Positions 16,269 to 50,100 are shown, numbered from the stretch's first letter. The stretch is DNA of 64,000 nt from Marsupella aquatica (GCA_973895155.1 OZ316899.1:4157241-4221240), one strand, 5' to 3'. Translations and numbers: made by a program. Notes: generated from the sequence alone by a model not told the origin.

Positions 16269-16271
16269 GGA

Positions 16272-16290
16272 ATCCCCAGTATGGTCGCCA
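16272..16290 (-). other. Element B PBS, tRNA-Arg-like
   Basis: TGGCGACCATACTGGGGAT, 1 nt after the 5' LTR. It resembles the complement of plant tRNA-Arg 3' ends. Confidence 0.7.
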
Positions 16291-16291
16291 A

Positions 16292-19388: not shown

Positions 19389-19577
19389 GACAGTGAGGGC
19401 TGTTGAGTAGCGGTCGTGTAGGTGAGCAAGTGCGGCTTTGTATGGGAGGGGCCGCAGGTGGTGCAAAGGGCACTAGGGTGCTTGCTCAAGGTATTCCGTG
19501 GAGGCTTTTGGGCACCAAGGGCACTTAGGCGTGAGTGTTGGGATTGGTGAGGGTGCTGGGTGGCAAGGTCCACCACT
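19389..19577 (+). repeat. 3' end of a family-A LTR
   Basis: Matches 62470-62659 and ends GGTCCACCACT, followed by GAACT. Confidence 0.9.
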
Positions 19578-25445: not shown

Positions 25446-27103
25446 AGTTCTAAGCCAAGGATGAACCCCAAGGAAATGCGCTGGCAGATGTTCTTGGCAG
25501 ATTTTGATTTTGAAGTCCGTCACGTTCCGGGGAAGACAAACACGATAGCTGACGCATTATTGCGTAAGGACCAGCATCGTGTCAATGGGATCACGATGCT
25601 CGAATCTGAGTGGCCAAAGGTTCTAGCCACAACGTATGGGGATGACAGGTTAGCTAAGGAATGGCAAAGCAATGGGGGTAGCCAAGGCAAGGTAAGGCAC
25701 GTGTCATTGGGGTTGGATACAACGCATAATGTTCAGTTATGGCAATACAAGCAGAGGCGTGTGTACATACCAGAGTCTATAAGGTTAGAGGTTTTGCAAA
25801 AGTACCACAACTTGCCTTGGGGAGGGCACGGAGGACAAGCCGCTACGTATCACAGCATGTCGCGAGATGTGTATTGGCCGGACATGAAGCAATCGGTCTT
25901 TTGCCACGTGCAAAGTTGTTACTCGTGCCAAAAGAACCAAACGGTCTATAGGGCAAAAGGAGGACTTCTGCAACCCTTACCGGTAGCTACAGCTCCATGG
26001 GAGTTTATCTCCATGGACTTCATTGTTGGGTTACCTGAGTCCCACGGCAGTTACTCCATCTTAACAATCGTGGATTGTTTTTCCAAGATGGTATATTTTG
26101 TTGTCTACTACAAAAATGGTTTCGGCTCGAGAGGTTGCCGCTCTAGTGTTTGACAATGTCTTCCGACAATGGGGATTGTTGTTGCATATCCTGTCCGATC
26201 ATGATAACCAAGTTCACAAGCCATTTCTAGAAGGCGTTGTTCCGGTTATCCGGTACGGACCTGACTAGGGGATCAGCGTATCATCATGAGACAGATGGCC
26301 AAACGGAACGGGTGAATGGTATCGTGGAGGACTACTTGCATCACTTTGTGATGGCCAATCAAAAGGATTGGGCAAAGTACTTAACAATGGCCGAGTTTAG
26401 GTATAACTCGACCAAGCATTTGGCAACGGGGTTTGCGCCGTTTGTGTTGGCCACAGGGAGGACGCCAAGGGCGCCCTCCTAGTTTATAAATCCGGAAGCT
26501 TGGCGGAGGGAAAGCAAGGTTCCTTCTACAGAGAATTTTATTCAAGAGCGGCGCTTAGTTGTGGAAGCGACTACCAAGGGTATGACCCTTGCCAAAAGTC
26601 GGTACAAGGAGCAAGGGGATAAACATCGATGCCAGGTAAACTTTGAAATTGGGGAGAGCGTCTGGTTGCAATTGAGACCTAAGCAATACCATGGGAACAT
26701 AAGTAGGAAGCTGGCTCCTAGATATGCGGGGCCCTATTGTATCATACAATGGGCCCACAAGGATCATCCAGTTTTGGTGGTGTTGGAGACACCCAAGGAA
26801 ATGGGCGTGGGCAAAAGCTACCATGTCAGCCGGCTCAAGAAGTTTGTCAAAGACGATGATCCCAACCGGGATCAGGTCTTGCGTCCGGACGCCTTGCTGG
26901 TGGAGGACGCTGAGGAGTTTGAGGTGGAGGCAATTCTGGACCACCGTTACAAACGCAAGTTGGGAAGACAAGTCATAGAGTATTTGGTGAAGTGGGCTGG
27001 CTATGATCAGGCCGAGAGTACTTGGGAACCGGAAGAAAATTTGGGTAATGCCTCAGAGATCCTTGGAACCTATTGTAAGCAAAGCGGCCTACCGCCGTTG
27101 TGA
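25446..27103 (+). pseudogene. Element A pol, 3' half (RNase H end, integrase, chromodomain)
   Basis: RWQMFLADFDF, IADALLR, HHCC (HNLPWGGH...CYSCQ), SMDFIVGLP, DGQTER, YAGPY, and chromodomain FEVEAILDH...YLVKWAGY...TWEPEENL. Confidence 0.94.
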
Positions 27104-27528
27104 ACTGGTACAGACAATTGTAGCTACCTTTGTGAGTTGTATCCTAGTTTCACTCCTCTTGGCCTCTTAAGGATAAAGTCGGATTGCATTGGGGCTAGAG
27201 GTTGTTGGGCGGCCGATTTGTTTTTTGCCAGTGGAAGTAGATGGTGCCCGCCTTACATCTGTGGGCGGGCTAGTTTGAACTAAAGGGGAGTACCCCAAGG
27301 GGAGAACAATGGGTCTGACGAGTTTGGAGTTAGCTTACCCGATTGGACTAGCATCCTTCTTGGATAAGTGGGATAGGTTGGAATTTCCTAAGTCTGGAAT
27401 GCGCATACCAACCTGGTTTGCATCAGCCTTATGGGCAAACCATTTGTAACCTCATAAAATTTTTAAGGCCCAAAGTGGTCTAGGCGTGTTGGAACGTTTA
27501 CAGAGGTCACGCAAATGTGACCATTTTT

Positions 27529-27540
27529 AAGGGGGGGTGC
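27529..27540 (+). other. Element A polypurine tract
   Basis: AAGGGGGGGTGC immediately before the AGTTGCGG LTR start at 27542. Confidence 0.8.
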
Positions 27541-29023
27541 AAGTTGCGGAACTCAACTACCTTAACACTTAGCTCTGGCGTTGCTGACTCCAACGCCGAG
27601 CTCCCTTATGGTCCAGGCCCGGATAGGCCATCCGGGGAGGACTTAGCATGGGAAGACTTGTGAGCAATGAGACGTGGCGCTAGCGAAGGCAAGGAGCCAA
27701 GCTAATGACACACACTAAGGACTTGGGCTAGCTGAGAGCTGGTCGGGTCAAGGGGAAATGGGCCGGGCTCAAGGATGACCGTCCGGACCTCCAGATGGAC
27801 CTTGAGTTCTGAGGGCTTGGGTGTGAGCTCGTCTTGGGCCCAAGGCCCGTGGAGTTGACGCCATGGGCAACGGACGCTTGGGGCATGAGTTATGGCCCGG
27901 TCCGGGTTGGGCCGATTGAGGACCTCGAGCGGCGATGAGACCTGAGGACCTAGGCATGAGCACTGGGTCGGCCCGATCACAACGGGCTAAGGCACTCTGC
28001 TTGGGCGCTCCTCCATATCGGACGACTTGCCCAACCCCAAAACCCGCGTGATAATGACATCGTCTTGGGTTGCAAGGACACGTATGGAGAGAGTTATGGG
28101 CGTTGCCAGTTGGTGGCGCGCCCATTATGCGCGATAGAATCCGGGTTGGGGGCCAAATGTTTAGGGACCAAAGCTGGTCCGGGGTTGGCAGGTTTCCAGA
28201 AGCATATATGAGGGGAGTGGTGTCTCCCTGGGGGGTAAGGGCGAGCCGAAGTCGTGAGCCACGGCAGTCGCGACACTAAGGGAAATCACTAAACGGAAAC
28301 AGCGATATCTTCCCAATGGGACATCTGTTGGAGGAATTCTTGGGTGCGTTGGAAAGCTCTCAAGGAGGGCTATGCCCTCCTGAGCTCATATGGGTCTGCA
28401 GCACCATGTGTTCTTGGGATTTTTGGGTGTTAACTCGCCTGCTTGCCAAATCTTGCCGAATAACAGCCAAACCGTGTTCAGTTTCCCTAGGGAGCTTGCG
28501 TCGAGGAGGCAAGGCCAAGTAGGTGTCACAACTACATTTTTGCATTTCAGGACCAGGTTTAACCTAACCCAAGATGACGTTCCTTCCATTAATGTCGGAC
28601 TATACGTTGTTAAGCTCCGGACTGTTGTTGGATGTCGTTTGGAGTTCCGACGGGATCAAATAACGTCGATTTGTGTGACGTTAACTTTACGTCCTTTAAG
28701 ACACGGTAAGTTACCTCGTATCTTATGTTGTACCTCACATTATGTCTTACTAGACGTGGTAACTTACCTGTTCCTGAAAGACGTAAATGAGAACGATGTA
28801 TAGGACGACATTCTTAAGTTTAGGCGTTTGGAATGATGTATTCGCAGATGCATCATCATAGAATACCATACGTGCATCGGGAAAAACAACGTTAATTCCA
28901 CATATTAGCGGAGGACAGACTCAACTATAGGCGGGAGGCTCACTATAGCCAGCATTCTAGAGTGAAGACATCAAAGGTCCTCAGTGTAGAGAAGTTGAAC
29001 CATGGGAGGCAAAGTGTTCAGCT

Positions 29024-29584
29024 ATGGTGCAGAAGTTCTTTGCAAATGTGCATTGTTGTTTCCTCCCGCTTGGTGAGGAGGAGAAGATGGTTCGAGGGTT
29101 CTTTTGCCGTGGAGGGCTTGTTGACAAGCTATGTACCTCACAGACCAATTTCTTGATTGCAAATACGTGGAAACAAGTTGTGGAGCACTTCAGTGACTAT
29201 GGTGGCTTGATCAAGCATTTTGCTGAAACCGTGCATTTCATCTCTACTCGGTGGGTAGAGTGCTCCATTCTTGCCAACAGGCAGTTGGATCCAGGAGAGT
29301 TCTTGTTGCATCCGAGCAGTGATTGTGGTCTGGAAGATTTGCCCGAGGATGATGACGGTGAGGCCTACCCTCCCACCTTGTCTAAATGTGACCTGTCATC
29401 CACTAAAGTTCAGATTGCTATGTTTGATTACAAGGAAAGTTGTGCAGCCAAGGTGGAGGCTCAAAGGCTACAGGCCGGTGAAGCTGTTGTGCGGAAGAAT
29501 TGGAATGCCAGCCAAAGGCGTGCTTCGTACAAGAAGAGGAAAGCGGACGAGGAGTACTACTGGTCTGGAGAAGGGACTCTGTAA
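29024..29584 (+). CDS. BRCT-like domain protein (CACTA cargo)
   Basis: GGLV...TNFLIA...VHFISTRWVECSILANRQLDPGEFLL fits the BRCT helix-3 W-x-x-x-C/S pattern. Confidence 0.6.
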   Translation: MVQKFFANVHCCFLPLGEEEKMVRGFFCRGGLVDKLCTSQTNFLIANTWKQVVEHFSDYGGLIKHFAETVHFISTRWVECSILANRQLDPGEFLLHPSSDCGLEDLPEDDDGEAYPPTLSKCDLSSTKVQIAMFDYKESCAAKVEAQRLQAGEAVVRKNWNASQRRASYKKRKADEEYYWSGEGTL

Positions 29585-29686
29585 ATCGAGAAAATAATTA
29601 AGTAGAATTAGTAGAGAAACATCAAGCGGAAGATAATAGATCAAGTATTTAAGGGGATCCGTGGCAGGTAGGAATAGCTTAGTAAG

Positions 29687-30154
29687 ATGGCTGGGAGACT
29701 AACATTAGAAGGCACAAAATTTTTTGCTATATGGAGTAGTATTGGATTAGGGTTTTGCTATGAAGGATGCGATACCAAGCTAGGAGACGACAGAGATTGC
29801 GCTCTGGGGGTGAAAGCAAGACAACAAAGGCAAACGGAAGAAGAACAATCGAATGTTTTCAGTAGGGATCGAGGCACTCATATGTGCAAGCTCGTAGGAG
29901 AGGGGAAGCCCATGTTCTGATTTATGATCCGCCTTAGGGAGGGAGACTGCCGAGTATGGAATGAAGCAGGGCAGCAGCTTTTCGGCATGAATGGTGAAAC
30001 TTTCCAACAACAGTTGACTACTCAAGAAGCAGTTGAAGAATTTTGCAGGGGAATCATGTCATCAAAGTGGAACTTGATGTTGGGACGAGAACTTGATCAA
30101 CGGCAACGTCACTGCTGGAGGCTAATTGCCGTTGAACGAGTAATCATTTTCTAG
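29687..30154 (+). pseudogene. RPA70 C-terminal-like OB-fold/zinc-ribbon protein (CACTA cargo), one in-frame TGA
   Basis: CYEGCDTKL...C...C...F*FMIRL...VWNEAGQQLFGMNGETF. ORFs 29687-29920 and 29924-30154 are in the same frame. Confidence 0.55.
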
Positions 30155-31138
30155 AACTTTAGTGAACCAGAAGATCCATTGAATGTCTATCATGTGACAT
30201 CAGAATTGAGAAACTTAACCATTGGCAGTTCAGAAACCACGGCTTCAACCACCAATTGCTTACACAGATGTTCGATGCAATAGTCTCAGTTAAACAGAGT
30301 ATACCAATCGGGAACTACAGATTGCGATTTAGTAACCGCAAAACAGCAGTTTATTAACTGCTATGCAGTTGTGTTCGATTAGTAAGTTAGATAACCATTT
30401 TGTTAGTCAGGCAGTTGGAAACCGATAATTTTGCCGGAAGATAGTATTTAAGGCAGGCAAGAGCGTAGAACAGGGTGTCACTTTTGCAATAGGTAATCTG
30501 ATTGAAAGGCGAAGCCAGACTTTCCTTAAGATGATCAGTAGATCTATTTAAGTGTTCCCTACTCAGATGTGAGTAGAATTTTGATGTTGAGAAGTAAAGA
30601 AATCATTACGGCACAACCTGATGAATTGTTCTTGGATGAGCCCATTGTTGAGAGAGTCTACCGGAAGAGATAGTGATTGATTGCGAGAGTAAGAACTAAG
30701 AGTGAATGGATTCAGAAATTGAGGAGAGGGAAAATTAAAGAGAAGATTGAGTAAAACAATCGGAATTATAAAGAAAGTTAAATCTGTTGAAGTTATAAAC
30801 CAAGGATTAGATAGAAGTATGTTAAGACGGTCATATTCCGACCGCAGGAATGAATGAAGATTAATTCACTCAGAGTGAACACGTTGAGGAGTAACACCTT
30901 GCAGAATCAAACCAACAGACAACTCATAAGTAGTGGAGTTTGGCTGAAGTGTGTGTGTGTTTCGAGAATGACAATCTAATTGTCATACACCTGCAGCATA
31001 ATGGAGTAATCATTGAATTGGCATTCTACTTATGAATAGCCTTTCTTGATCTACTTCGTAGCATAAGTAATTGATCGAACTCCTGGTGGGAGCATCAATG
31101 AGACAATTGGATCTAATCAGATCACAATCACTGGAAGC

Positions 31139-31458
31139 ATGAATACTAACAACGAGGATAGGAAGAATTCCTCACTAATTAGGCTTAGGCCAATTGAATT
31201 GTGGATCTGTTTGATTGGTTCGCACCTAATTACTTGTCGGCTAAGGGAAGAGAGTATTCCAATTTGTATTTTCACTTATCGTGAGTGGTGTGGATTTATA
31301 GAAATTATATACAGGGAAGGATAGTATTAATTGAGTCGATCGTACCCAGGAAGTGGAAAGAAGAAGTAGACATTGAAGAACATTCAGCGGAAATTACAGG
31401 TTCAAAGTATGAAAATGATTTACTAGATTACCCTGTTGTTGGACAATTAATCGGTTAA
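31139..31458 (+). pseudogene. Small conserved cargo ORF (~106 aa, one frameshift)
   Basis: Protein-level homolog of the intact ORF 63561-63881. Confidence 0.7.
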
Positions 31459-34400
31459 TACAAAAGTGAATGAATAGAGAAGGGTTATGTTGAGTTAATC
31501 GTAGGGAAGAATTAGTGTTTAACAGACTCATTAATCAACATCAGTCTGGAGGGAGGGTGTAGAGGGATGACCATGACTCATGTACGCTACATTTGCAGTA
31601 GAAAGGATGGTAGAGCTATTGTGTATCTCTATTTGGTCTATGTGCAACAATAAACACATCCATGAGTGCTATTTGTCGCAACAATTGTGTGGTTTGAATG
31701 TTGTATCTTTTTCCTGTGATTAACGTTGAAGAAAGTTTAGTACGTTGACTGAAACGTCGTATCTAAATTATTAACGTCATTCTACTCGAGGTAATATATT
31801 TTTGTCGCGCCATACATCATTAAGAATGTCGATTTTATCGTGTTACGAAGTATAGAACGACGTTATTAATCCCTTATAACGTCGGCTGATGGTTTGGTAC
31901 ACGATGTTAACTCCCGTTATGTCAAATTTGCGTAGCTATAAATGACATTAGAGTATTTGGCATCGACATAAAATTGGTCGGACAACGTTAATGACAGTTA
32001 TCCCTTGTAGTAGAAGGCCGAGGGATCATGTCCATAAATGTATGGTTGTTACTTGTTTCTTTACCAAGTGATTAACAAGCCCATCCCACTCTCCAAATTG
32101 ACAGATGCCTAGGCCATGAAATATGTCTATTTATATGCAAATCGTGACAACAGTCAATACAAATGGGGATAGTGAGTCTATCATGTCAATCCTCATTGTC
32201 TACAATAGTTGATGGCATGAAGCCCTTCCTACGGCGTGGAAAGATGGGAATCACAATGGACCATCAATGATGTTCTGTACATCAATGGGAATGAATGTAG
32301 GGCCATGCACTGCAAGGAGCCCCTCCATGCGCTCCAAGGCCCATATGCGAAATGATGCATGAACACGGTCTTGTGCTGCCCCTATCCGCTGCTGCTCCAC
32401 CCATGCCCTACAAGTACTGGGTCACATATACATTAGATCCCAATTTGTGCCAACAACCTTGAATGTACATTTTAAATCTAAGTAGGACTCAACATGAAGG
32501 ATTACGTCCCTACCTATACAACTCTCTCCAATCTGACATCTCGGTGCGGTTCTCCAACACATAATTGTGGATCTGTCGGCGAAAAATGTCATCATGTAAT
32601 GATCGCTTCTTTGACGCGCCCATCACTCGCAACCCACCATTGTCATCATCTTGTGCCTCTTCCCAAGCTATGGGAGCTTGTGTGTCCAAACTCCCTATCA
32701 CCCCGCTTGAGTAGAACAGGCACTCTGACATAATATACCATGTTGCCATACTTTCCTCTGGTCGAGCGGGTTGGTGCACCCGAGACTTTAGCACTTTCAT
32801 GAACCGCTCTACCCAATACATCCACCGCGCATGCACTGGACCAGCAATGGCTACCTCATCCACCAGATGACATAGCAAATGCAACTGCATGTCAAAAATA
32901 CATGGGGGAAACACCTTCTCCATATTGCACATAACACGGGCAGACCGTTCCCTCATCTCGGGAATCTCACTCTCCTTTATTTCCTTGGCGTATACCCACG
33001 TGTAAGGGGTACTCAAGATTTTGTCAAATTATTAGTATGATAAACATATGCAATGATCACATCATAAATATATGCCAACAAGACTATGCTAACCTGAAAA
33101 TGGAGCACAACTCATATACTGTATGTCGGAGTAGGCGTCGCTCTCTAGAATCATCACAACAACGCAAGACAACAGGTAACACATGCTGAATCAACTTGTG
33201 ATAATCGTGAGACTTCAAGCCTATTGGGGGTATGTGGGCTTCCCTTGTAGTGCACCCACGGAAGCCGGCTCCGTAATGGCTAGGGAACTTCATTTCACAT
33301 ATCATCCCGTTCATCTCCTTCAAAATCTGTTTTGGCAAAACCCAAGGAGCAGGTGGCTTCTCCCCATCTTGAGTTATCCAACAACTCTTGACCACTCCAA
33401 CCTGCTTTGCATCCTCTTGGACCCCGCAAGTATCATTCATCCCATAAATGTGCTTCACCAGGTTCTTGGCAACATTTACTCCAATATGCATGGGGTCCAA
33501 CAACCATCGGATCTGGAGCCTCTACAAGATGAAGAACCAGGTTTTGCTAGTGAGAAACTCACAAATAGAATACTACAAGTCACTAACTTAATCTGATTTT
33601 ACTTACCCTCCAATAAGGCAAGTCCCACAAAGCTGAGTGACGATTGACACCACAGTGCTTAGGTTGAAGTAACTTTGCCTCCACTTTCTCCGCCATTTGA
33701 ATTTGACCCTCAGCTGAAGGCCCATTGGGACATGGCCTAAACTCAGTCTTAGCCCAATGTGTGGTGTTATGTCGCAATATATCATCCATTGGCAAACGAA
33801 CCCTATTTCCCTCATATGTGGTTTTGTGCAGTCGCTTAAAGTATCTCCCATGCAACTCAGGACCACATGAAGGGCAAGCTGAATAACCGGCCACTTTCAA
33901 GCCAAATATTGTGCCCATACCTGTCAATGACATTTAAAACATTGTCACATGCAATAGAACCATGCACAATGTATGTCTCAATTATTTCTATGACTGAGAA
34001 TTACCTGGACCATCCGTGGTGCAATGGGTGGTCATTGCTCTCATATTAAATGTCCTCCCATTATCCGGTGTACGAGTCACATCTGTGGTCACTACCCCAA
34101 ACTCCCATAGCTTCTACAACTCTTCATAAGCTGGAGCCAAACAAATGTCTGGATTCTTACAGGCCTGAGGACCCGGAATGATAGCAAGGAGGAGAACATG
34201 ACCCTTCTTCATCGCCAACCATGGAGGGATATTTTGATTGAGCAAAAGAACTGGCCATATGGACTTAGGCTTCCGTCGTTGCTTGTATGGGTTTACCCCA
34301 TCTATTGCTAACCCCAATCAAACGTTCCTTGGCTCCCTAGAAAAATCCGGCCAAGTGCTGTCGATGTGCTCCCATGCTTGACTATCGTGATGATACCGCA

Positions 34401-35711
34401 TAATCCCTGGTGGAGATTTGTTCTCAGCATGCCACGTTTGAAGTGCTGATAAATGTTTCCATCGATAAAGATGCTATAGTCGGGGTGTGATCGGGAAATA
34501 CCTGAAGACCTGCCATAAACAGTGTTACAACCATCACTTCGACATTAAATCAAATTTAACATCGTCTCACACGATGTAAATACACCCGTACAACGTAACA
34601 TACGACGTAAAGTTTCTCAGCAATGTTAGTAACGTCGGCTACTTCATTTTACATCTTAATAAACGACATAAATATATGTCTACCATGTAACAGACGACAT
34701 AAAAAACTAATTGGTCATTTGGAGACGTAAGTTACATCTTTAGAAAGGATGTACGTGTGCATACGTCATAAATGACGAGGAAAATGGGCAAAACTATGTT
34801 TAAATAATTGAAACAACATTCTATCAAACATAACACCGCCAGGAGGAGGAGGACATCACCTTCTCTAGGATGTTTTCGTTGATGGTATCCGGTCGGTACC
34901 GTGGAAGCTTACATTGTGCCTCTGGGCACTCTGTATGCTCAGAGTATGTCCCTCTGTACATGATGCAACCACTTGGACACATGTGGATAGTCTCTAAAGT
35001 CAATCCAATTGAGGTTAACAACTTCTTAGCTTCCCTCACACACCCAGGGAGAGTGTTTGGTTGGGGCAAGAGTTTTTTGTGGAAAGCTGGAATAGTGCAT
35101 CTGTATGGACGTCTAAAGTGTTGAAAACTCCCTGCAAATTCAACATATTCAACAAAGTGGCACCCAACCTGATTTGTGAAACCAGGGAATTGTATGCAAT
35201 TAGTTTGAGGCATGACATTGGGTGTGGTAAGTAATGGTCGACACATTCACTAGCTAGTTGGGCTGGGGCATGTGAGACCTCTAAAAAACCAAAAAACAAT
35301 AAATTTATGGTAGTGGAGTGCTTTCTCCCTTAGTCCAAGGTAGATCAAGAGTTAAAATAGTAGTTAGAGAAGGTTTATATGGCCTCTTATGAGTTTTTGG
35401 ACTTAAAAATATATATTTTTGAAATGATGACACCATTTCAGGAATCCTCCGACCAAAACTAGACCTTACTTGGGCAAGAAAATATATGTTCTAAAAATAA
35501 TAATTTGGCTTAGGGTTGAGGAGTTATAGCTATAAATAAATTTTCATACCAAAATATACGGAAAATATCTTATAGCAATGGATAGGAAAATAATTCAAGC
35601 CATTATATTTTCAGATTTCCAAGATATTAGAGAAAAGGTAAAAACATGAAATTACCATAGTCAAAAGTTAACTAGGTAGGTAGGTGGCAAAGACTTCACC
35701 AATTGACCGAG

Positions 35712-35860
35712 CTACTTGGTCCTTGGTCCTTGGTGGGCTATCTACTACCTGGTCCTTGGTCCTTGGTGGGCTATCTACTACCTTGTCCTTGGTCCTTGGT
35801 GGGCTATCTACTACCTAGTCCTTGGTCCTTGGTCCTTGGTGGGCTACCTGGTCTTTGGTC
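35712..35860. repeat. 33-bp tandem repeat (~4 units) built from CCTTGGT subunits, in TnpD intron 2
   Basis: CCTTGGTCCTTGGTGGGCTATCTACTACCTGGT units. Confidence 0.9.
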
Positions 35861-37190
35861 TTTGGTCTTTGTGGACTTGGGCCTTGGTGCACACCACTAT
35901 TTTGGACTTTGTGGGGTAGTAGCCTAGTAGGAATTGTATAAGAAGTGAAGTTTTCCTTGAGGCCAATGTCCATTCTTCCATTGTGTTCTTGCACATACTT
36001 GCTCTAGCTTGAGGAGTAGTGCTTGGATGGGGAGTTTGTGCCATGTATGAACCTCATTGTGTGTGTAGTAAAATGCTTTTACTTTGAAACCACACCTTGA
36101 TGTGTACATGCACCTATGTTGAAGGAAGCTAGGTTGTTGATTGTGTTCCAATGGAGAAGTGGATGAAGATATAAGGCCTTGGCATTTGTTATGTTGAAGT
36201 TGAGAGGTGGAAGATTGTGCATTTTGAAGTTGTGTTATTAATAGTGTTTTGTTAGTGATAAGAGAAAGCTTAGACATTGAGTTGGTCACAAACTAGAGAT
36301 GTGTGGTTGAAGATCTTGGGCAGGAGCTTGAGGCGAGTCAAGACTCATCGATTAGACTTGGGGATGAAAGAAGTTTAAGTGAGTACTAAGGTCATTGATT
36401 AGGGTAGGGAAGGAAGATGGTTCATAGGTGACAGCTATGAATATTTGGGTTTTATGGGAGAAGGATGAGAGTTGAGAGTGTGTGAGTTGAAGGTAGTTTC
36501 AAGCAGAATCTACACTTGTGGTGGTGGAAACCAAACTACCTATTAGTGTGAGTATTTTGACATGATAGCAATAAATGCCCGAGGAGGACCCCCCAATAGG
36601 ACCTGGTTGACATTAAAGGACAGTATTATAAGATATTTAGTGGTAAATAACTCATTAGTTCTCATGCAAGTTGTTGACAGGGCATACCCTCAACTTCATG
36701 TGGATACTATTCAATCATGAGACTTACCGTGATGATGGAGAATCCAGGAAGAGTGGAGTTCTGGCTTCCATTTCCAACTGGTCCCAATCTTCCTGGTCTA
36801 CTTCCATGGTAGGCCTCTCACCCTGAGGTGCATGTGGTCCAAAGTGAACGTCCACAAGGTGGGAAAAAGCTTCCTCTTGAAGAATGGGTGCATCCCCCTC
36901 ATCTCCATCGTCCTCATCAAATTCTCCATCATATGCATCATGGTACTCCTCATGGTCACTATCCCCCTCAGCATCTTCCTCATCAGAAAAGTGCAGAGTG
37001 GCACGTAGGTGAAAGTCACATGCTGACATTGTCATCATGGATGGGTGAGGTGTAGGGGTAATGTATGCACCATCCTACAATTGTTAAAATAATTATTTAA
37101 TACAACATTATAATCAAACAAATAATACAATATGATTTAATGCAATATGCAACAATGGGTCCATATATTCTGAATATATCATGTCGATCC

Positions 37191-38007
37191 TCAATGCCAA
37201 TCATAATCTACAAAAATCTCTTCCCCTACTTGAATGGTGCGGCTAGCATGGGTCAAGATGTAACGAGTACAAGCCTGTGGCAAACGAGGGTGGGTCTGGT
37301 CATGGTACTCATGCCACTCAGCGTTTGGCCTAAAACCTAAACGCCAACAACCCACAATGCTATTGATGTAACCTGCCAAGTTTCCAGTGCGGGGTGGATA
37401 ACCATCCATCTGAGCATACCTAGGGTCTAGCTTGATAGACATGCCCTATCAACCAAAGGTTGGACATTGTTGAGACAAGATGCGCCATCGCTGTGCACAA
37501 TACTTTGGCCCAAAGAATGGAAAGAGCTGAGGCAAGTCCTTGGGCTCACAATCAACAGGGACCACAATATCTACAAGTGCAAATAATCCTAATCCTACGT
37601 TAGGGCCCAATGTGGAGGGAAGGAGGACCCAAGGGCGACCCCAGACTATGATAGGCTCCCTGATTGGAAGGTCCAATGGGAGCCCAAATTGGGTAGGGAA
37701 TGAGTCCTTTATGATGTCCAAGGCTCTCCCACGTACGTAACTCTCTCGGTTCCCGGGCACTAGATGCATCAAGAAAAGGGCAACGGGGTGGCCTCATCCT
37801 AGTCAGACAAGACTCCAACGACCGTGGTCTAGTACTGACCACTACTCCCCTCTCAATAGGGTGCACCCGTGCCACCCTCACCCTATCAAATACACGGTCT
37901 ATTGCCCGTAAGGTGGCATCTAGTGCCGATGGGGGGACTAGTGCTGAGAGCGCTCGACGTGCAACCTCTCTCATGCAGTCCTTAGGGGGAGACCGTACAA
38001 TAAGAAT
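37191..38007 (-). pseudogene. SET-domain lysine methyltransferase-like exon inside the first TnpD intron
   Basis: GLGLFA, GNLAGYINS...PNA, A.R.I.VGEEIFVDY. One frameshift near 37790 and an in-frame TGA TAG at 37446-37451. Confidence 0.82.
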
Positions 38008-39131
38008 CTGTTCCACATGTATGCAACAAAATTTCAGAAAGTGAGAAACATGAACATTGCTCAAGAAGCCAACCTACCCCAACCTAGTAAAAGTTAAAGT
38101 TACTCAAAATGGTTGTGCAAAAGGATAAAACTTACCTCTGGTGTCGGTGGAACATAACGACCGTGGATCCCTAAGTGGCTAACAATGGTAGTGCTCTCGT
38201 GAGATACAATGCCCTTGCATCGTCTACAAGGGCAAGGCATCTTACGGACTGGTCCAATACCACAAAGAGCAGCCATGGCCTCTCCAAACCCCTCTTCCAC
38301 TGGCAAAGGTGAGCTGTATGCCTGGGGCTCACGTGACCACCGGCGACAGTGTGACCAATGACGGCGGCTCCTCTCTCTCCTTCCGTCCTTGTGACTGGGA
38401 CGGTGATGACGTCAAGATCCACTAGTCGTCCTCCGGGGCAATGACTCACGACCCCTGCTCTCTGGTGAATAATCCCTCCTTTGCGGCGAATAATCCCTCC
38501 TATCCAGTGAGTCATCCCTCCACCTATCCGGCATATAGTCCCTCCTCCTAACCAGCGAATGATCCCTCCTCCTATCCGGCAAATAGTATCTACCCCTATC
38601 ACGATGCCAGTATCTGGAGCCAAGACTCGTATCCCCATCATCTCTCTTATCGGAGAGAGAGTCCGATGCATAGATCACCATGCCCTGCAACAAATTGAAC
38701 CGTCTTTGATTAATGTGTAGGGAAGGATCCATACCCTAAACATACCACACAAACCCTAACCCTAAAGTACAATGCCATACAGTACGTTACAAGGCTAACA
38801 GTCATTTTTCAAAGAAACCCTAACATTTAATGTCGTCAATGGACCCGCAAACAACGACCCTTAAAACACGAAGGACGACGTTTATCTAGATTAACGTTGT
38901 TATGTACGAGGTATTATGTATGTCGGTTTAGGTAACCACGTTTATAACGACGTAAAATTAGGAAATTGGCGGATCCGCGAGGTTAGGCATCCCCGGTCAT
39001 TTCCTTTGGGAAACATCGGGGGAGTATCAAGGGATTGTTTGAATGTGACTCACATTTGACATTCCCCACCTCTAGTCCTTACCTCTCCTTGCCTCCTCTA
39101 CCTCACATAATCGCTCACAGAATAGTCTGCC

Positions 39132-41243
39132 ATGTTGTATCCAGGCTATCTTCCCTATAGTGTGAACTTTGATGCACTGAAGGTGGGCCTGGAGGATCCA
39201 GAGGAGTTGGAGAAGGTGCATCAAGCCCTACATTTGACACATTCACTAGTTCAAGCATTCAACCACAGCTGGCAATTCATGGGAGGACAAGGAACAAAGG
39301 AGTCCAGGTTTATAGAATACCTGGAGAGTATTGAGGCCAACACTCCTGCCGACGAGGAGGGGGTCGAGATTGAGGAGGGGGCCGCGATTGAAGTGCCTGA
39401 ATCCACGCCTGAGCTTGATGGGGCATCGATTGATATGCTACCTTCATTCCTGAGTCTACCAGACGATGGTTGGGATGATCTTGCCTTCACTGGGATTCAG
39501 CTAGATTCTCAGGCAGCAGCTTGAACTCCTATCAAGAGTCAAGTGACAATCCCACATTAGAGATACAGGCCAGAAGATGATAGGAGGGACCATTGGCAAC
39601 ATAGGATGAGGAGGAGGCGATCTCATTCTTTGTCAAACAGCAGCACTGAAAGGAGAAGGCGAAAGGGGAAAGGATCCAATGACCAGAATGCAGGCACTTC
39701 TAGCAAGAGACGTAGGGGAGATTGACATACAGGAGCAGAGAGGAGAGAAGACCACTCACGATCGTTTCCTCTAGAGCAGCGACGTCCTTCTCAGCAAGCT
39801 GCAGCTGCTTCTGCCAACAGGGAGCACCTTCCCACCATCACCCTTGCCGCTTTTGATGCTAGGTTGGATGTCATACATGAGAAAGCACTCACGAATAGAG
39901 TGCAGACGTGCGTAGTTAAACATTGTCCCGGCTGGACTACTTGGAAGGAGCTTGTGCATAACCAGAAGAAGTTCCAATTGCTCCTGAATGACGTGCAAGC
40001 TGGATTCAGAAATGGGCGAGAGATTGACTATGGCCACATTAGGAAGAAGATCGTGAATCACCTAGCTGATCGGCGTTTCAGGTGGAGAGCCAAGGTCCAA
40101 AAACTGAGATGCTTGAGGACAGGGGATTACAAGAAACCTGATGGGATGAGTGAAGAGGACTTCAAATTGATTGTCTCCGAATTGGAAGCAGCCCTAGACA
40201 TCCCAGTTGGCAAGCGAGTGCATATGGGAGACAAGGCCACTGCTGTTCGAAAAGCGAGTGGCAAGAAGGTGACTAATTTTGGGGGGCAGGGAGGATGGGG
40301 AGGATTTCTTGCAACCTATGTAAGTGCAGTGACTCACTCTATACTCATTGAAGTCTGCATTCGCCAGTTCGTGTGCTGCCGTGGTGTAATCCTGTGCTTT
40401 ACGTCGTTTTTTAGTATTAACGTCATCTTGGCCGCGCATTACCTTGCCTCTTACGACATTTTCTCAGTAGTACCTCGCTTTGAACTACGTTAGCACTACA
40501 TTAATGTCGACAGGACAACGTTAATACTATGGGGTCGCCCTAAACTTCTTACAAGACAACGTATGTATTAGTAACATCGTATGATGATAGGTAAATAACA
40601 TCATCTTGAACGACGTAACTTCCCTTTGCTGCAGAAGTGGAAATATGGCCGAGATGCCAAGTCAAGTGAGCAAGAGCGGCTATACTCTAAGCAATATGGC
40701 TCGGCAGCCCTATGGGCAAAGCTTGACTCTGTTCCGGATGACCACCCGGTAAGTGTGCTAGCTTGTTTAGTACCATTCCATAGACCTAGACTGAAACGGT
40801 ATCTTATGCAAACCTAGACTGAAATTGTATCTCGTGCACACATGGATTGGACTGCACTAGAGGGTTTAGTAGCACGACCCATTGAGGAGGATGAGGAGCC
40901 CGACACTATAGCCCTGGAGGAGGGTACCCAGGAGGAGGACCCAGTACCTTGCAGTCAGCAGGGCTCCACTTCTCGTGACCTTTTCCCTACACTGGAGACT
41001 CATAGGGCCAGAGGACAAGGAAGGGAGAGACAGAGGGAGGAGGGAGATAGTGAGGGAGGGAGAGATAGAGATAGAGAGAGGAGGAGGAGTGGTGAGAGGC
41101 GGTCCACTAGGGTAACACGTAGCACCAGGCAGATAGTGCCAAAACCTAGAGGCAAGGCTCCACCCTTAGCTGCACCAGAACCAAAAGGCAGTAGCAGTGG
41201 CTCAGAGCAGGATGCCAAGCAGTATCAGTTGCGTCGGCGATGA
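39132..41243 (+). pseudogene. TnpA-like (Transposase_24/Ptta-like) multi-exon gene, divergent from TnpD
   Basis: KKPDGMSEEDFKLIV...VTNFGGQGGW pattern. GTAAGT donor at 40320, CAG acceptor at 40634, further exon 40842-41243. Confidence 0.6.
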
Positions 41244-42579
41244 GGCGGAGTATCGGGACGTGATAGGCCCCATTCTCAACGGCATTAGGTTGTAGGTATT
41301 TCAGTAGCAGTAGGTCCTCCATGCATTATGTACATATTTTTTGCCATTTTGATTCAGGCCACCCATTTGTGGTGGCACCTCATTCCGGGTTACAATATGG
41401 AAAATAACATGGATATAAGTGTATTTTATGTGTGTGAACTGAACCCTAACAAGGACCCCACCCAGACAGTGCAATGTGTAATAGGACGTACGTCACACCA
41501 CAAGAGCACAATACATCATCCCCTACTACGTTAACTTACCCATACGTCTCAAAAGAGGTCGTAATTTACCGGCCATGGACGATGCTAAAATAATACAACG
41601 TTAAGTGCATGGCACATTACGACATACTAGACGTGGTTAATGTTTTATTACGTAGCGTTACACGACGTTTATGGGTAAAGTTAAACACTAGCGTTGGGTA
41701 TATTTTATGTAGTCTGACATGTTGTAAAACCATTACCTCCTATTGTACGACGTTAAGAACAATATGCTGGATGTGGTAAAGAGCATCTCCCCAAACGTGG
41801 TAATTAATGTCGCTCTATTAACGTCGTGAATGAGGTCTTTCCTCCGTTGGCAATATATGTCGTGATTAACATCTTCTAAAAGTCCGTTAATCAGCCTAAA
41901 ATGTAGTTGTGTGTGGAGGTTGAGTTCCAAGAGTGCTCGGTCCTTAGACCGTGAGTGAGGCAAATTGGGAGTCGGTTGTACAAGGCGGGGCCATTCTGGT
42001 CCCGACGTGCTAGGACAAGCTTTAGGACAAGCTGCACTATTTGGGCCATGAGCATGTCTTGAGGTCAGGGCGATCAGTTGGTGATGGATAGGTACGAGGG
42101 GGAACACGGGCCGCGCCCATGGAAGGAGCTATTCTGGACAAACAGTGGGCGTGGGTTTTGGTTCCGGCTTATGGCATCGGGAGGACCTATCGCTGACCTA
42201 TTTACCAATGTCTATTGAGCTTGAGTTAGGATGCTAGACTTGGCGAGTTCTAGATCCTGAAGGGTTACTTACCGAGCTACTTGGTTGCTTGTGCAGACAA
42301 TGAGGATCGTTGAGTAGTGATCGTGTAGGTGAGCAATTGCGGCTTTGTATGGGAGGGGCCGCTGGTGGTGCAAGGGGCACTAGGGCGCTTGCTCGAGGTA
42401 TTTTGTGGAGGCATTTGGGCACGAGGGGCACTTAGGCGTGAGTGTTGGGATTGGTGAGGGCGCTGGGTGGCAAGGTCCACCACTGGGTTTAAGGTCTCAT
42501 TTTTAGATGTTGACACATACGATAATGTAATCTTGGCCGTCAATTGATCGGAATTTGTTTGTGATAATTTTATCGGAGT

Positions 42580-43600
42580 TGGTATCGCTCGTGGAATAAT
42601 GACCTAATGTTTGTACGTGAATGAGCCCTTTCTTAGTTGCAGCGATAAACTTATTGATGTTGCATTGCAAGTGACTTGTCCTTGTGTTGTGTTGTTCAAG
42701 GTTGAATCTGCATTTCCGCTATTGTTGTTTTTTGTTCTGTGGTTTGTCAGAGTGATAAATTTATCACTCCTTGCATTGAGATTTGCAGACTTTGTCATCA
42801 AGGGTTCTAGTGGAAAGAGTGGATCTGCCAAGGCTGAAAGTCTCATGACAAGCCTCACAAACGCAATTTGGACAAGTGAAGACATTTGTGATGAGGTCAA
42901 GTTCATCAAAAAACCATGGTACTTTTGGGACACCAGGTTACAGTCCAAGGATATGGCAAACTGTGAGTCTCCTATCCTTTGGGTCCAAATGCAAAAATCC
43001 GCAAAGGTTACTCTCTCATTTGGCCCGGTTGTTGGTGTGGCAATCCGTGAGTACTTGATTAGCCAGGGAGACTGAGGCAAAAGTGTTGAAAGAGGGCTTG
43101 AGTTTCTTGGCAATGTGCGGACGCAAGGGATTCACCTCTGTCATTGTTACCATGGAGAACTTTCTTGAGAAATCCCTTGAGCGTTACCCAGAAGACCCGC
43201 TCGTCGCGAAAGTTTGGAAAGCAAAAGTAATGAATCTTATGGGCCTGGTTGGGTGTGCCAGTTTGTCCAAGATTGTAATCTCATCATGCTACCAAGGGTG
43301 AACACAGAGTACAAGAGGCTCACTGGTGAAGAATTCAGACCCATCCAGAAAATAGTCATTAAGAGGCCTGGTTCAAACGGGAGTGGTGCTTTGTTGGCAA
43401 AAAGTGTTGGAGGAACTACTATGGACGAGCACGCAAGCTATCTACGGAAGGGAAGTGGGAGGGGGAAAGGAAGAGGAAGAGGGAGCACCAAGGGAGATGC
43501 CACTGGTCCTTCCAAGGACGGGAGAAGGAGCCAGGGGACCGGTGTTAGCGGAGGGGGAGGAAGGGGCAGCGACAATTGTCGAGGTCGTGCAGGTTTAGGT
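42580..43600 (+). repeat. ~1 kb coding module, copy 1 (direct repeat of 54235-55233)
   Basis: Colinear DNA and protein similarity (SLTNAIWTSEDIC...EYKRLTGEEFRPIQKIVIKRPG...GRGKGRGRG). Confidence 0.88.
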
Positions 43601-43813
43601 GCTCATTTTTGTTTTGGGCTTTGTTTGCGATAATTTTATCAGAATTGGTGTAATAGCTGTCTAAATTAGAAACTTAGAAATAATGAAAAAAATTTAAAAT
43701 TTTGTAGTTAGAAATAGATTAAACATAGCCAATTAATCTACTTTTAGATATAAGTAAAGTTAAGACTTAAGTTAGGCAGATTAGTGGATAATACCCTGAG
43801 TTATTAAGTAGGG

Positions 43814-46682
43814 GTGAGACAAGCCAGAAGAAACTACTATCGATGTTTTCGAAGCACGGAAGGAAGATTGGTGCTTCCAAGTTTGACGGTGCGTTACAAA
43901 GAGCATTTTGGCGTAAAAGCACAACGGCGCTTTGGAGCAAAAGCGCAACGGCGTTTCGGGGGAAAAGCGCAACCGCACAACAGCATTTCGGAGCAAAGGC
44001 GTAAGGGCGCAACAGAGCGAAAGCGCAACGGTGGATCACTTGGCATTGATCTCTTCGGATTGATAGTTGGTGACAACGCCTTGTTCCTTGTTACTATGGT
44101 AGACAAAGGGGGAGAGATGACTGCGAGAAGAGTTCCCTTACCTAAGGCCGTCCCTGTGACATACCCTACGATGGAAAGAAACTTGCACGTTTTGAAGAAA
44201 GCACTGGCGGTCATGCACCTGAGTAAATTGCTCACTCTGCCTTGGTCCGTAACTTCATTAAGTTTCCTAAAGGATTTCAGTGATGGGGCACGAATCGAAG
44301 TTGGTATGGTGGGAACTGCTCGGGCAAATCCAGAATTCTGGACTCTGCAATTTGTTGTTGATGCTTTCGGCTGTCCCGCCGAAGGTGACAGCCTTCACTC
44401 ACGACAAGGAGAGACTGCGAGGCCTTATTTTTCTGGAACTCAAAACGTTTGCCATGGATGGAAATGGACCAGTGCACCGATTATACTCTTAAAATCATTT
44501 TAGAGCTTTTGATTCCAATTCTCCATCCCATTCGGCCACATATGATACCTGTGTCACTTGCCAATACTATTGTGGCAAGTTGGAAGGGAGTTGCTCAGAT
44601 AAATTGGGCCTTGTTGCTAAGACAAGTTATTTTATCTCAAGTAAAGAAGGTGAAAATGGATGAGTTCACTACTCTCCCTGCTTGTCTTTGCCAGTTATAC
44701 TTTCATGGGAATTGCTTACTTCCAGGCCAACAAGAGGAGCGGATCAGACTGCTTGATGAATTTGATCTTAGTGAATCAGGACAAGAGGATACTGAAGGAG
44801 AAGATGCTGATGAAGTTGAACCAGAGTTTACTCCTCTTACCAGGGAGAACCACTTGTGGAACCCAGAAGTACCTCTTCACCAATTCCTGATAACCCTCTA
44901 TCCCCTTTTGAAGATCTCAATCAGGATAGAAGACTTTACACCCCCCTCAATTCCAATCTCGATGAGTATACATCCAAACTAGAGGTTCCCCCACCGCCTG
45001 TACCTGTAGTTGACATCTCTGTCCCTATTACTCTTTGCTCACCTACAGTCCCAACTCAAAATTTATCTGTAGACAGCTTGACCCCTTCTATGAGATCCCG
45101 CAAGAGACCCTTCATGTTCAGCAAACCAATGGCTGATGAACTGAGAGTAGAATCTAATCAGCAAATTATTGATAAGTTAAGCAACTTATTGATCTGTGAA
45201 CCTGAGGAGATAGTTGACTATGTTGAGAGGTTAAGAGCAGCCTCTGCGACTCTGCCTGAACCTAGTAGTCCCGACTCTCCATACTCTCCAACCCAAGGTC
45301 CTACTCAGTTCTATCCTGAGGTGATGGAGCTATTTCAACCCACCTCCAATATTAGGGTTACAAATATTACTGAAGCTGAACCAATGGAGGAAAATGATGC
45401 ATCACCCAGGTTAGAGCTTCAACAGACACTATCTGCCTCCCCAGGTCATTCTGCTGAACACTATTCTACTCTTGTCAATAAAATGACTGACATGTTGGAG
45501 TGTGATGAGAGACACTTAATTGATGTCTTAGATGATCTTTTGCATAAGACATCAGCTTTACTTACCCGAGATCATCATCGAGAATATTGTGAGGATTTAG
45601 TCCACGGGCTTACACAGATTTTCGGATGCAACTCCAAGCAAGTCTATTATGCTGTCCGTTATCATACCTCAGCATCTGGCTCTCCCATTTACTATTCTAC
45701 CCCTCCTTCTAGTCATTCACCCCCCTCTTCTTACAGTCCTTCAAATCAACCAGACCAGCTCTACCCTAGTTTTCCAAAACCTGAGATCACACCTACAGGT
45801 GAACATCTTGCCATTTCCTATTCTGACATCCTTCCACCAGGTCAAGATAAATCCTGCCAAGTCCATTTCATTCCTACACTCCATATTGACCCTTAAACCC
45901 CTCAGGAGAATATTACACAATTTGCTGAGTTTGTCAGAGTTTCAGACCTTAGAACTCCTCCCATTTTAGAGTTTTGGCAATACTATCATAAGAAGAGAGT
46001 TGAATGTCTCTATATCCTGAAGCTTCATCTGAAGGATGTCACCCGCCTAGAGATAGTAGAGATGGATGAGATCTGGACAGAGGCTAAATATTTTTGCCCT
46101 ATTCTTGCTGTCATAATCCTAGTTGGACACATTGTACTGGAGAATGGAGATCTGGCCCTGGCATACTTTGGGAATTTACGTGCCTATGTCTTGGAATTCA
46201 TCATCAACTTTTTGAGACAAACCAACAAACGATATCAGGTCGACCATGGTGTCCTACCAGAGGAACCTTTTATTGTTCAACAATTTATCTCACCAATTGC
46301 TGAGAGTCAGAGAATCTGGAACAACATCACTTCCCAACGGTTGGCTGATTACACCCTGAAGTGGCGGGAACTCTTACCTAGTGTCACCCCACTTCTATCA
46401 CTTGCCAAGGACTCTAACACCTTCATCAACAAGTTTCCACGCAACTACCACACCACTTGTTGTAGTTATGATCTGGTCGGCATCTATATGCAAGCTAGCA
46501 AGGTGAACACTATGTTTCTTAGGAGACTACTCCCCATTCTAAATGCTGAACGACAAATCAGGTCTCTTCCATTTGCTCGACATGATATGCAGGTTATGGA
46601 TTTCCTTCAAGAGGTGATTCGAACTGAGACATTCAAGAGTTTTCAACAACCGGACCAGTTAGCACTACTTCAGGAGGATTGA
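43814..46682 (+). pseudogene. TE accessory ORF block (plant-mobile-domain/Transposase_32-like, S/P-rich ORF, unknown ORF)
   Basis: Long ORFs 43814-44503, 44449-44982, 44856-45896 and 46062-46682. The LLTLPW...DF...WTL..VVDAFG pattern is followed by an acidic linker. Confidence 0.45.
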
Positions 46683-47198: not shown

Positions 47199-50100
47199 TG
47201 TTGTGAGACAAGGTTTTTGATCATAATAATAGATCACTCACTCCATTAAGGTATGGCTTTATATAGCCATTGGGTTACATCATATAAGGTTAAAGGTAAC
47301 CTTATTCTAGGGTTAAAGAGTAAACTATGGTTTACAACACTCCCCCTTGGTTAGTTTATGGGTGTGTAAAGTAACCACTGTTTTAACCCTAGATTATCTA
47401 ATTGGTATTCCCATTGATGTAGCCTCATTAAAACCTTGTCGCTTTCTTCTCAAGGAGAGAGTACTACCATCATTACATATTGGGATCCAATTGGTCCATT
47501 TTGGATATCATATTTGTATTTTGTCTAAAAATATGTTTCCTATGAATGTGTATGTTCATTCATTCTATAGATTTGTTATACTATGGGTATTTATAATTTT
47601 CCTATACTATCCGATGGTTTGTATAATGTCGATTTTGTAGGTCTTTGTTTTATTGACGACCTAACTTAGCTGTGTGTTGTGCTTTCTCCAAGATGACTTC
47701 TTTAGGTTCGTAAGATCTTTGTCGTAAGTCGTCGGGTGGGGGAAAAGCTTGGCTTGTGAGCTCTGCATCGCTAGCATGTCCGATCGAGCTGTCAGGTGTT
47801 ATGCATCTCGATCCGCCGTGTATTTGAAGATCCTTCATTCGGGTGGATCGCCTTCGCTCTTATGTGTTAGTACGAGTCTTCTTTCGATTCATGGTGTGGC
47901 CTTCATGGTGGTGGCATGTTGAGTGTTGGCGATCTGTATCACAATAACAGTGGTGGACGAAGAAAAAAAAGGATGAAGTGAAAGTTATGAACGGGGTTGC
48001 AGTGGGGATTGCAAACCTCTAATATGAGCTGCTTTGCGCTGGTTCTTTCAGTTTCGTTCGTCAATAGTTGGATTGCTTGTGTTGGCATTTGTAGTTTATG
48101 CGCTTTTCGTTAAGGATTGTATGTCATGGCTTTCATGGAGTAATGTTGATAGCTTTTTCATACCTATGCCTGTGATGTGGTCTCGATGAGTTCCTGCAGG
48201 TAGAGGTTTTGTAAATATATCTGCCCTGTTGTCCTGTGATCGAATCCATTCTACTTGTATGTTTTTGCCTTGCTGTTCTTGGGTAAAGAAGAACTTGGGA
48301 TCGATGTGCTTTGTTCTTTCGGTTTTCATAATGCCGTTGATGATTTGGTCTATGCAGGCTTTGTTGTCCTCATATATTATTGTAGGTTCTGTTATCTTTG
48401 ACTTGCCCGTGCTGGTCCTGATGTGGTTAATGATACTTCTTAACCATAGGGCTTCTCTGCATGCCTCGTATAATGCTATGACTTCTGAATGATTCGATGA
48501 TGTGGTTGTCATCGTTTGCTTTGTGCTACGCCAGGATAATGCAGTGGTGCCTTGCAGGAAGACATAGCCCGTTTGTGATTTTGAGTCTTGGGGGTCAGAT
48601 AGGTATCCAACGCCTGTGTATCCTATGAGGTTATTGGGGCTGTCTTTTGGGAAGAAAAGGCCCAGGTCTATGGTGCCTTGGAGGTACCTGAATATCCTTT
48701 TTAGGCCATTCCAGTGGCGGATTGTTGGTTGGGCGCTGTGTCTTGCGAGGAGGCTGACTGAGAACGATATGTCTGGTTGTGTGTGGTTCGCTAGGTACAT
48801 TAGTGCGCCCACTGCAGATAGATAGGGTTTTTCCGAGCCTAATATTGGTTCGTGTTCTTGTCTGCGCCTGAACATATCTTTTTCTGGGTCAAGGGACCGG
48901 AGTTCCATTGGTGTGGAGACCGGGTGTGATAGGTGCATGTTAAACTGTTTGATAATTTTCTGTGTATATGTTGATTGGCAGATAAAGGTGCCATTGTGGA
49001 GGTGCTCGAATTGTAGTCCTAAGCAATATGTAGGTTCACCCAGGTCTTTCATTTCGAACACTCCCTTCAGAGTTCTGATGGTGTCTGTGATGATTTTGGG
49101 TGTCCCAAATAGATTCACATCGTCGACGTACAGTGCTAGTATTATGAATTCATTTTTCATTTGTTTGATGAAGATACATGGGGCAATATCGTTGTTGGTG
49201 AATCCGAGGTTGATCATCTCTGTTTTAAACTTCTTGTACCATATACGTCCGCTCTACTTAAGGCCATTTATGGAGCGTAATACTTTTATGGCTAATGTCG
49301 GTTTGCCAGGTCCTGTATTTCCAGGGGTTTTCTTATGCTTGTGTTGTGTATGTCCACTTTGCATGAGGAGCTCTTTAACCTGTTCATCAGGTATGATCTG
49401 TCGTATACCCGACTTTATATCTGGGCTCAGGTTCTGGGACGTCTCCCCCTGAGTATATTGTTTCACTCTCTGGATCAATTCGTGAGGTGCTTTCATGTAA
49501 ATTTCTGTGTCCAGAGTGCCATAAAGGTACGCAGTTACCACGTCCATTAAGTTGTTGATAAGTTTATGTTGTATGGAGAATGTAATAAGGTATCTGTATG
49601 TAATTGCGTCCATGATGGGTGAATATGTGAGGTCGTAGTCCCGGCCTGGTATCTGTGTATACCCCTTCGCCACTAGCCTTGCTCTGTATCTTATTACCTC
49701 TCCTTTCGCATTCCGTTTTCTAATGAATGTGAATCGGGATTCTGTGTAGTTGTTACCTGGTGGTGCCTGTATAAGTGGTCCAAAGATCTGTCTTTTGATA
49801 AGGGCGTCCATCTCAATGTTGATGGCCTCTTGCCATTTCGGCCAATCTGCTCTCTTTTGAGCTTCTTTCATAGTGAGTGGATCTGGTGTGTCACTTTCTA
49901 TTTCTTGTACAATATGATATACAAACTGTTCGTTTATTTCTGTTGTCTGTCATTTTTATATTTGTCCAGTGTTTTTATATTGAATCGAGATTTCTTTGTT
50001 ACCTGAGTTTTGGGTGTTTATGGGTTCCGAGTGTATCGTACTTAATGTTGTGACAGGGATCGTAGCCGGGGTTTTCCTTTGTCGTGGGTGGATGTCTTTT

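Follow-up and report, generated by a model that had tools for sequence, protein, structure and literature searches.

A SET lysine methyltransferase exon probably carried in the first transposase intron of a CACTA transposon family, seen in a dead copy from Marsupella aquatica

A stretch of 64,000 nucleotides (nt) of Marsupella aquatica DNA (GCA_973895155.1, OZ316899.1:4157241-4221240; hereafter the window, with positions counted from its first letter) was analysed for a transposase gene of the CACTA (En/Spm) type that lies on its minus strand and appears to hold a second coding region, with a SET domain, in its first large intron (Table 1). Direct reading of exon 1 of this gene gave a low-complexity stretch rich in R, S, D and Y followed by a CxCxxC...H...H zinc finger. 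An earlier interpretation made without database searches (hereafter the sequence-only reading) had proposed that exon 1 ends in phase 0 at GAG/GTAAGT (38136) and that two phase-0 acceptors follow, AACAG leading into 38007 and TTGTAG leading into 37074. Reading of the minus strand confirmed all three junctions, so that the window gene has one phase-0 donor and two phase-0 acceptors. The intron that separates the finger exon from the near acceptor (38135-38008) cannot be read through because it contains stops in frame. The exon that opens at the near acceptor comprises an N-terminal helical portion, an R-rich linker, the SET domain and a TGA stop (37193-37191). Between this stop and the far acceptor lies an AT-rich spacer, which could contain a poly(A) site or could be the remainder of the intron.

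The broken SET region of the window was searched as separate pieces. Its last piece, of 84 amino acids (37445-37194), matched the Pfam SET profile (PF00856) with a score of 24.1 bits (E = 5e-5), above the curated cut-off of 22.4 bits; scores of eight relatives ranged from 17.7 to 35.6 bits and exceeded the cut-off in four of the eight. The three window pieces were 46%, 54% and 64% identical to P0001, an intact protein of 260 amino acids that is the closest relative, and it was on P0001, not on the broken window copy, that the fold was judged. An AlphaFold model of P0001 obtained with the family alignment as input had a predicted local distance difference test score (pLDDT) of 87.6 and a predicted template modelling score (pTM) of 0.71. 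Foldseek comparison of this model with the PDB returned 282 matches with E ≤ 1e-3, and all 50 of the matches listed were SET lysine methyltransferases, LegAS4, NSD1-3, MLL1, SET7/9, SETD8 and SETD2 among them. Neither the window piece nor the family profile had a significant match when solved structures were searched by sequence; the tie to solved SET enzymes therefore rests on the fold. By its match to the hidden Markov model (HMM) of Pfam and by its predicted fold, the family is a SET-fold lysine methyltransferase module, which bears out the identity given to the exon by the sequence-only reading.

All the motifs on which that identity had been based, GLGLFA, GNLAGYINS and GEEIFVDY followed by a stop, were located in the window, GLGLFA and GEEIFVDY providing the GxG cofactor motif and the catalytic Tyr of the ELxxDY motif. 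Residues invariant in alignment A2 include (in P0001 numbering) the GxG glycine G129, N204, E252 and Y257 of ...EILVDY. Two peculiarities already pointed out for the window copy turned out to be properties of the whole family. The catalytic Tyr is not followed by a cluster of cysteines, and no member has the His of the canonical N-H-S motif, although the Asn is kept, the family having I-N-S and then an insert of 7-9 residues before P-N; in two members GYINS is replaced by GYIQS or GYNQS. The proposed viral or bacterial flavour of the domain, on the other hand, proved not to be specific. Bacterial LegAS4 tops the fold ranking but NSD, MLL and SET7/9 come no more than an order of magnitude behind, and viral SET structures matched the P0001 fold at 9e-8 to 1e-3, comparable to cellular SETs. 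A specifically viral origin of the SET exon was considered and dropped, as the viral structure library matched no better than the cellular one.

When the 84-amino-acid piece was compared by HMMER with 1.84 billion representative proteins, only 29 matches with E ≤ 1e-3 were found, P0001 being the best (E = 1.6e-29, 64% identity). Most of the matches examined are about 230-310 amino acids long and end no more than about ten residues beyond the C-terminus of the SET domain, and no host-type SET protein is present among the 29. Named members of the SET family come from Riccia sorocarpa and Calypogeia fissa, which represent two liverwort classes; the remaining ones come from metagenome and sequencing-run assemblies. 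Searches with alignment A2 revealed one locus in metagenome contigs and no relative in viral contigs, and the SET pieces had no second copy within the window. Near-identical intact copies occur within lineages (L007/L008/L009 and L005/L010), and P0005 is found on eight contigs, the four shown deriving from four different sequencing runs.

Intact members made it possible to carry out the comparison of substitution rates proposed along with the sequence-only reading. On the SET open reading frame (ORF), the proportion of nonsynonymous differences (pN) between lineages was 0.29-0.36 versus 0.67-0.80 for synonymous ones (pS). The ratio of nonsynonymous to synonymous rates (dN/dS, omega) was 0.10-0.29 for those lineage pairs where it could be computed, a rough estimate because dS is saturated in several between-lineage pairs. 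Within lineages (L005/L010 and L007/L008/L009) dN/dS was uninformative, only 1-4 differences being available. On these comparisons the SET ORF is under purifying selection.

Further downstream on the minus strand of the window, Transposase_21 and DUF4218 domains were found, and these identify the element as one of the plant CACTA/En-Spm type, in agreement with the sequence-only reading. The transposase part is of the usual plant CACTA sort, with its nearest relatives in Riccia, the fern Adiantum and Calypogeia. From the SET exon through DUF4218, the window element and an element of Calypogeia fissa are collinear. In every locus with enough flanking sequence (Riccia L001 and L002; Calypogeia L003; L005, L007, L008, L011 and L012-L015), the SET ORF lies directly upstream of transposase exons on the same strand. 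The expectation that the SET exon should recur in other members of the family was thus borne out, the exon being present, intact and at the same position in L001-L015. Relatives of the transposase part were surveyed as well: none of the 120 listed has a precomputed Pfam SET annotation, and among 70 scanned a SET motif was seen in only two Riccia models.

The finger of exon 1 was compared with the Pfam Transpos_assoc profile (PF13963), and gave sub-threshold scores of 20.9-22.3 bits (cut-off 27.7); in all relatives, SET-less transposases included, it is profile positions 31-61 that are matched at this sub-threshold level. The same type of finger is located directly N-terminal of the transposase in the SET-less proteins P0073, P0074 and P0077. 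The part of exon 1 that precedes the finger differs between lineages. In L005, the frame that matches exon 1 is open and R/S-rich over 122 codons. The corresponding region of L006, L011 and L012 encodes poly-Ser/Asp with a basic RGRKRRR start, and in the window the R/S/D/Y-rich coding part at 38465-38587 is made of tandem repeats of 21, 24 and 48 nt. The low-complexity head is thus fast-evolving yet present throughout.

The junctions of the window gene were then compared with those of its relatives, all recovered contigs of which keep introns. The donor, GAG or CAG followed by GT, is found in phase 0 at six loci from five lineages (window, L005, L007, L011, L006 and L012). The SET acceptor, ...CAG, is in phase 0 at seven loci from six lineages (the same loci and L003), and the transposase acceptor, ...AG followed by G, is in phase 0 at six loci from six lineages (window, L005, L007, L003, L011 and L012). 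Introns homologous to 38008-38135 keep both GT...AG and phase 0 in L005, L007, L006, L011 and L012. The first transposase-specific exon of the window (36728-37074) is homologous to L005 1395-1730 and L003 11051-11410, and the spacer between the SET stop and this exon is roughly 100-220 nt long in L005, L003, L007, L011 and L012. A conserved peptide, TPxPHxS, begins exactly at the transposase acceptor, and an in-frame TAG is present immediately upstream of this acceptor in three lineages (window, L003 and L007); the transposase exon therefore needs an upstream coding exon ending in phase 0. Since the SET ORF is terminated by a stop in every lineage, 0-10 residues after the catalytic DY, the finger exon is the sole candidate for this role.

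A sister clade encodes finger and SET in a single ORF with no interruption, as seen in P0024, in P0175 (54% identical to P0024) and in Riccia P0028. Single-exon finger-SET sequences of this clade (from Riccia and two further sources) include L001 10368-11837 and L004 433-1704; a GGA/GTACCA occurs just after the finger in L004 and a GAG/GTACAG about ten codons further in L001. The junction of finger to SET suggested by the sequence-only reading is thus consistent with a donor kept in five lineages, an acceptor kept in six and a single ORF in the sister clade, and its view that one donor could feed either SET or transposase is consistent with the conservation of the phase-0 junctions across lineages.

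We consider it probable that the window contains a dead copy of a CACTA (En/Spm-type) element from a family, so far with named members from liverworts only, which carries a SET lysine methyltransferase as an accessory exon in intron 1 of its transposase gene. The family probably produces a chromatin-modifying enzyme of its own. According to the scheme that we propose, exon 1 would encode an arginine/serine-rich, probably nuclear-targeting stretch and the CxCxxC...H finger that normally heads CACTA transposases, and the phase-0 donor of exon 1 in a single pre-mRNA would be spliced in either of two ways. Splicing to the near acceptor would yield a finger-SET protein, of roughly 470 amino acids if the copy were intact, terminated by a conserved stop that directly follows the catalytic ...VDY. 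Splicing to the far acceptor would skip SET and yield a finger-transposase. We infer from the conserved junctions that both splice forms are produced; the SET form may arise through an alternative terminal exon with polyadenylation in the spacer or through a plain choice of alternative 3' splice site, two arrangements that are indistinguishable here. Because the N-terminal module would be shared, the SET enzyme is expected wherever the transposase goes, be it the element ends or a common partner. There it would methylate lysine, most likely of a histone, altering the chromatin state of the element, with a presumed effect on silencing; that the enzyme acts on the chromatin of its own element is pure conjecture. 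The complete scheme, in which an active histone lysine methyltransferase, alternatively spliced from one promoter, is delivered by the finger to the element and counters silencing or licenses transposition, is put forward only tentatively, and we regard it as doubtful in this full form.

Several observations weigh against the proposed reading. No spliced finger-SET protein from an intron-bearing relative was found in the protein collections. Three lineages have a Met codon 11-13 codons past the SET acceptor and two have one directly at it, which would allow SET to be translated with no finger attached. In Riccia L001, with finger and SET in one exon, a look right behind the finger revealed no GT at the site that corresponds to the donor. 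The enzyme is presumed to be active although the canonical His is gone, a loss that speaks against activity, and the omega values are affected by the saturation of dS. Finally, a comparison of 24000-32600 with 38700-46000 revealed no convincing pair of CACTA terminal inverted repeats flanked by a target duplication of 3 bp; the window copy of the element is old and interrupted.

The main rival explanation is that intron 1 houses SET as an independent gene, with its own AUG, which is never joined to the finger exon in this clade; its transcript would retain the intron or be started inside it. The first two of the observations listed above are those expected of such a gene. The Met that lies 11-13 codons past the acceptor is conserved, within the sequence MRxxARR, in the window, L005 and L007; in L011 and L006 the ATG is right at the acceptor, and the linker that joins acceptor and Met shows no sequence conservation. 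However, the frame is open from acceptor to Met in all lineages, the lengths of the linker vary by whole codons (11, 13 and 11), and the phase of the acceptor equals that of the donor everywhere. Moreover, the finger and SET share one conserved ORF in P0024, P0175 and P0028 of the sister clade. We therefore consider a nested gene unlikely, though it deserves more credence than the two explanations that follow.

Plant DNA transposons frequently capture gene fragments, and SET could be a fragment of a host gene picked up by transduplication and functionless for the element, as the broken state of the window copy might suggest. But intact ORFs of about 230-310 amino acids occur in lineages that are just 40-55% identical and come from two liverwort classes, their position and junctions are constant, pN is far below pS and host-type SET proteins are missing from the 29 matches, which makes transduplication highly improbable. 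Just as improbable is a constitutive SET exon giving a single finger-SET-transposase fusion of the SETMAR kind: four Riccia proteins (P0027, P0057, P0066 and P0072) do combine SET-family sequence with Transposase_21, but they are predicted models. The only one mapped, that of P0027, was pieced together from at least eight short exons and so may be an artefact of prediction on a decayed copy. Moreover, the SET stop comes soon after the catalytic DY in all lineages, there are in-frame stops ahead of the transposase acceptor, and no conserved donor was found before the SET stop.

Whatever the family does, the window copy is a dead fossil with no activity of its own. It contains three in-frame stops, one 4-nt frameshift and a fragmented transposase. 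The frameshift and the TGA TAG had been recognized in the sequence-only reading; the TGA in exon 1 is an additional lesion.

Table 1. Coordinates of the CACTA gene remains, their lesions and a neighbouring ORF in the window
Feature	Position	Strand	Remarks
Exon 1	38732-38136	minus	ATG at 38732; phase-0 end GAG/GTAAGT at 38136
In-frame TGA in exon 1	38414-38412	minus	from translation; absent from the sequence-only reading
Zinc-finger core CPCRRCKG...H...H	38234-38163 (about)	minus	from translation
Intron between finger exon and SET exon	38135-38008	minus	128 nt, GTAAGT...AACAG
SET exon (pseudo-exon in this copy)	38007-37191	minus	acceptor AACAG ending at 38008, phase 0
Frameshift in TTACGTACGT	37740-37731	minus	4 extra bases compared with family ELRGRALD
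GLGLFA motif	37595-37578	minus	from translation
In-frame TGA TAG	37451-37446	minus	relatives have R-Y of the conserved TFGRYG here
GNLAGYINS motif	37385-37359	minus	from translation
GEEIFVDY motif	37226-37203	minus	from translation
Spacer from SET stop to transposase acceptor	37190-37075	minus	AT-rich, 116 nt
First transposase-specific exon	37074-36728	minus	acceptor TTGTAG ending at 37075, phase 0; end CG/GTAAGT
Degraded transposase exons	35155-32192	minus	collinear with the Calypogeia element
Transposase_21 (PF02992)	34317-34114, 33933-33583	minus	61.8 and 22.8 bits; the second below the cut-off of 28.6
DUF4218 (PF13960)	33016-32510	minus	99.2 bits
Convergent ORF at far end of element	29024-29584	plus	Calypogeia homologue L003 15417-15965 (minus), same place

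The intron after the first transposase-specific exon has about 1.5 kb of extra sequence in the window (35160-36720) compared with an intron of about 105 nt in the Calypogeia copy, and this extra sequence is probably a later insertion. It includes a tandem array of a 33-nt repeat (3.7 copies, 96% matches) at 35711-35866. Short motifs rich in ACG (TTTACGTCGT, AACGTTAAT and similar ones) are repeated in either orientation at 38890-38960, 40397-40529, 28686-28787 and 34596-34612; the copies that precede exon 1 and those around 28.7 kb are possible subterminal repeats of this element. The ORF that faces the transposase gene from past its 3' end is 30% identical to its Calypogeia homologue (BLASTP, E = 2e-26) and has no match among Pfam families; perhaps it represents a second gene of this CACTA family. 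The window consists almost entirely of transposon remains, and outside the CACTA element it is crowded with debris of Ty1/copia and Ty3/gypsy elements. Such remains are found at 3797-11526, 14874-22840, 48096-51772 and 58869-59828 and include Ty3/gypsy sequences (RNase H and integrase; reverse transcriptase and protease), a Ty1/copia pol ORF of 1075 amino acids together with a second, broken copy, and a DUF7869 ORF. A long inverted duplication made of several blocks (24000-24361 versus 27861-28293 and 25128-25445 versus 27542-27861, 87-94% complementary) spans 24000-28293 and flanks an ORF at 25461-26153 that encodes an integrase zinc-binding domain.

Transposons are silenced via histone and DNA methylation, and tools for acting on chromatin are known from very few of them. 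If the family described here does make a finger-bearing methyltransferase, it would provide a direct demonstration of a plant transposon editing its own chromatin, and a chromatin writer encoded by a transposon would share an addressing module with the transposase of the same element. It would also be a second, independent CACTA case, beside En/Spm, of a splicing choice at intron 1 that yields a regulator and a transposase. The proposal is readily testable: intact copies exist in sequenced liverworts and the protein is small and folds confidently. Liverworts include a transformable laboratory model, Marchantia. The presence of SET on transposons is already known. In the literature we found no SET-carrying CACTA element of land plants and none in which SET shares an exon with its transposase, Repbase Reports lying outside the search, where an earlier description is possible.

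In maize En/Spm, also a CACTA element, TnpA and TnpD are reportedly produced from one transcription unit via alternative splicing. The liverwort family belongs to the same superfamily and similarly has a second coding region in the first large intron, so that the choice of acceptor would set the product. The product of the nested region, however, is a SET-fold enzyme, unlike TnpA, which is of the DNA-binding type. The layout is also different, since in En/Spm transposase ORFs are inside an intron, whereas in the liverwort family the transposase is the outer gene and splicing is predicted from its junctions.

SET genes have been described on HarbingerS elements, on Phytophthora MuDR, on some Helitrons and, as the accessory gene PAG2, on Plavaka of red algae, Plavaka being placed within the wider EnSpm/CACTA superfamily (PMC12730594; bioRxiv 10.1101/2025.02.11.637652). 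In all these cases, as in ours, a transposon carries a SET methyltransferase as an accessory function. Judging by their descriptions, they are set apart from the family described here, which has liverwort hosts and is a plant CACTA of the tnp2 type; also by description, their SET genes are separate, in contrast to an exon that lies within the transposase gene and apparently shares its first exon. PAG2 in addition has a DNA methylase domain, and the liverwort SET protein is without one. Another factor encoded by a transposon and acting on the epigenetic state of the element is the anti-silencing protein VANC of VANDAL (Mutator) elements, as far as can be told from its citation in PMC12730594. 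The liverwort protein resembles VANC in its proposed role in the epigenetic state of its own element, where a part in silencing is hypothetical; VANC, unlike it, has no SET fold.

As an enzyme, the liverwort protein resembles SET7/9, SETD8, LegAS4 and the SET proteins of giant viruses, which are minimal SETs without a post-SET zinc cluster, and the fold alignment to these covers about 145-160 columns with 15-22% identity. It differs from them in having I-N-S in place of N-H-S with the insert before P-N, and in the family-specific pair of N-terminal helices with the R-rich linker. SETMAR is said to be a primate host SET gene fused to a mariner transposase, and there, too, SET and transposase are found at one locus and are linked by splicing. 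But SETMAR is a domesticated single-copy gene of the host that makes one protein, whereas the liverwort module resides in a multi-copy element and its SET has a stop of its own.

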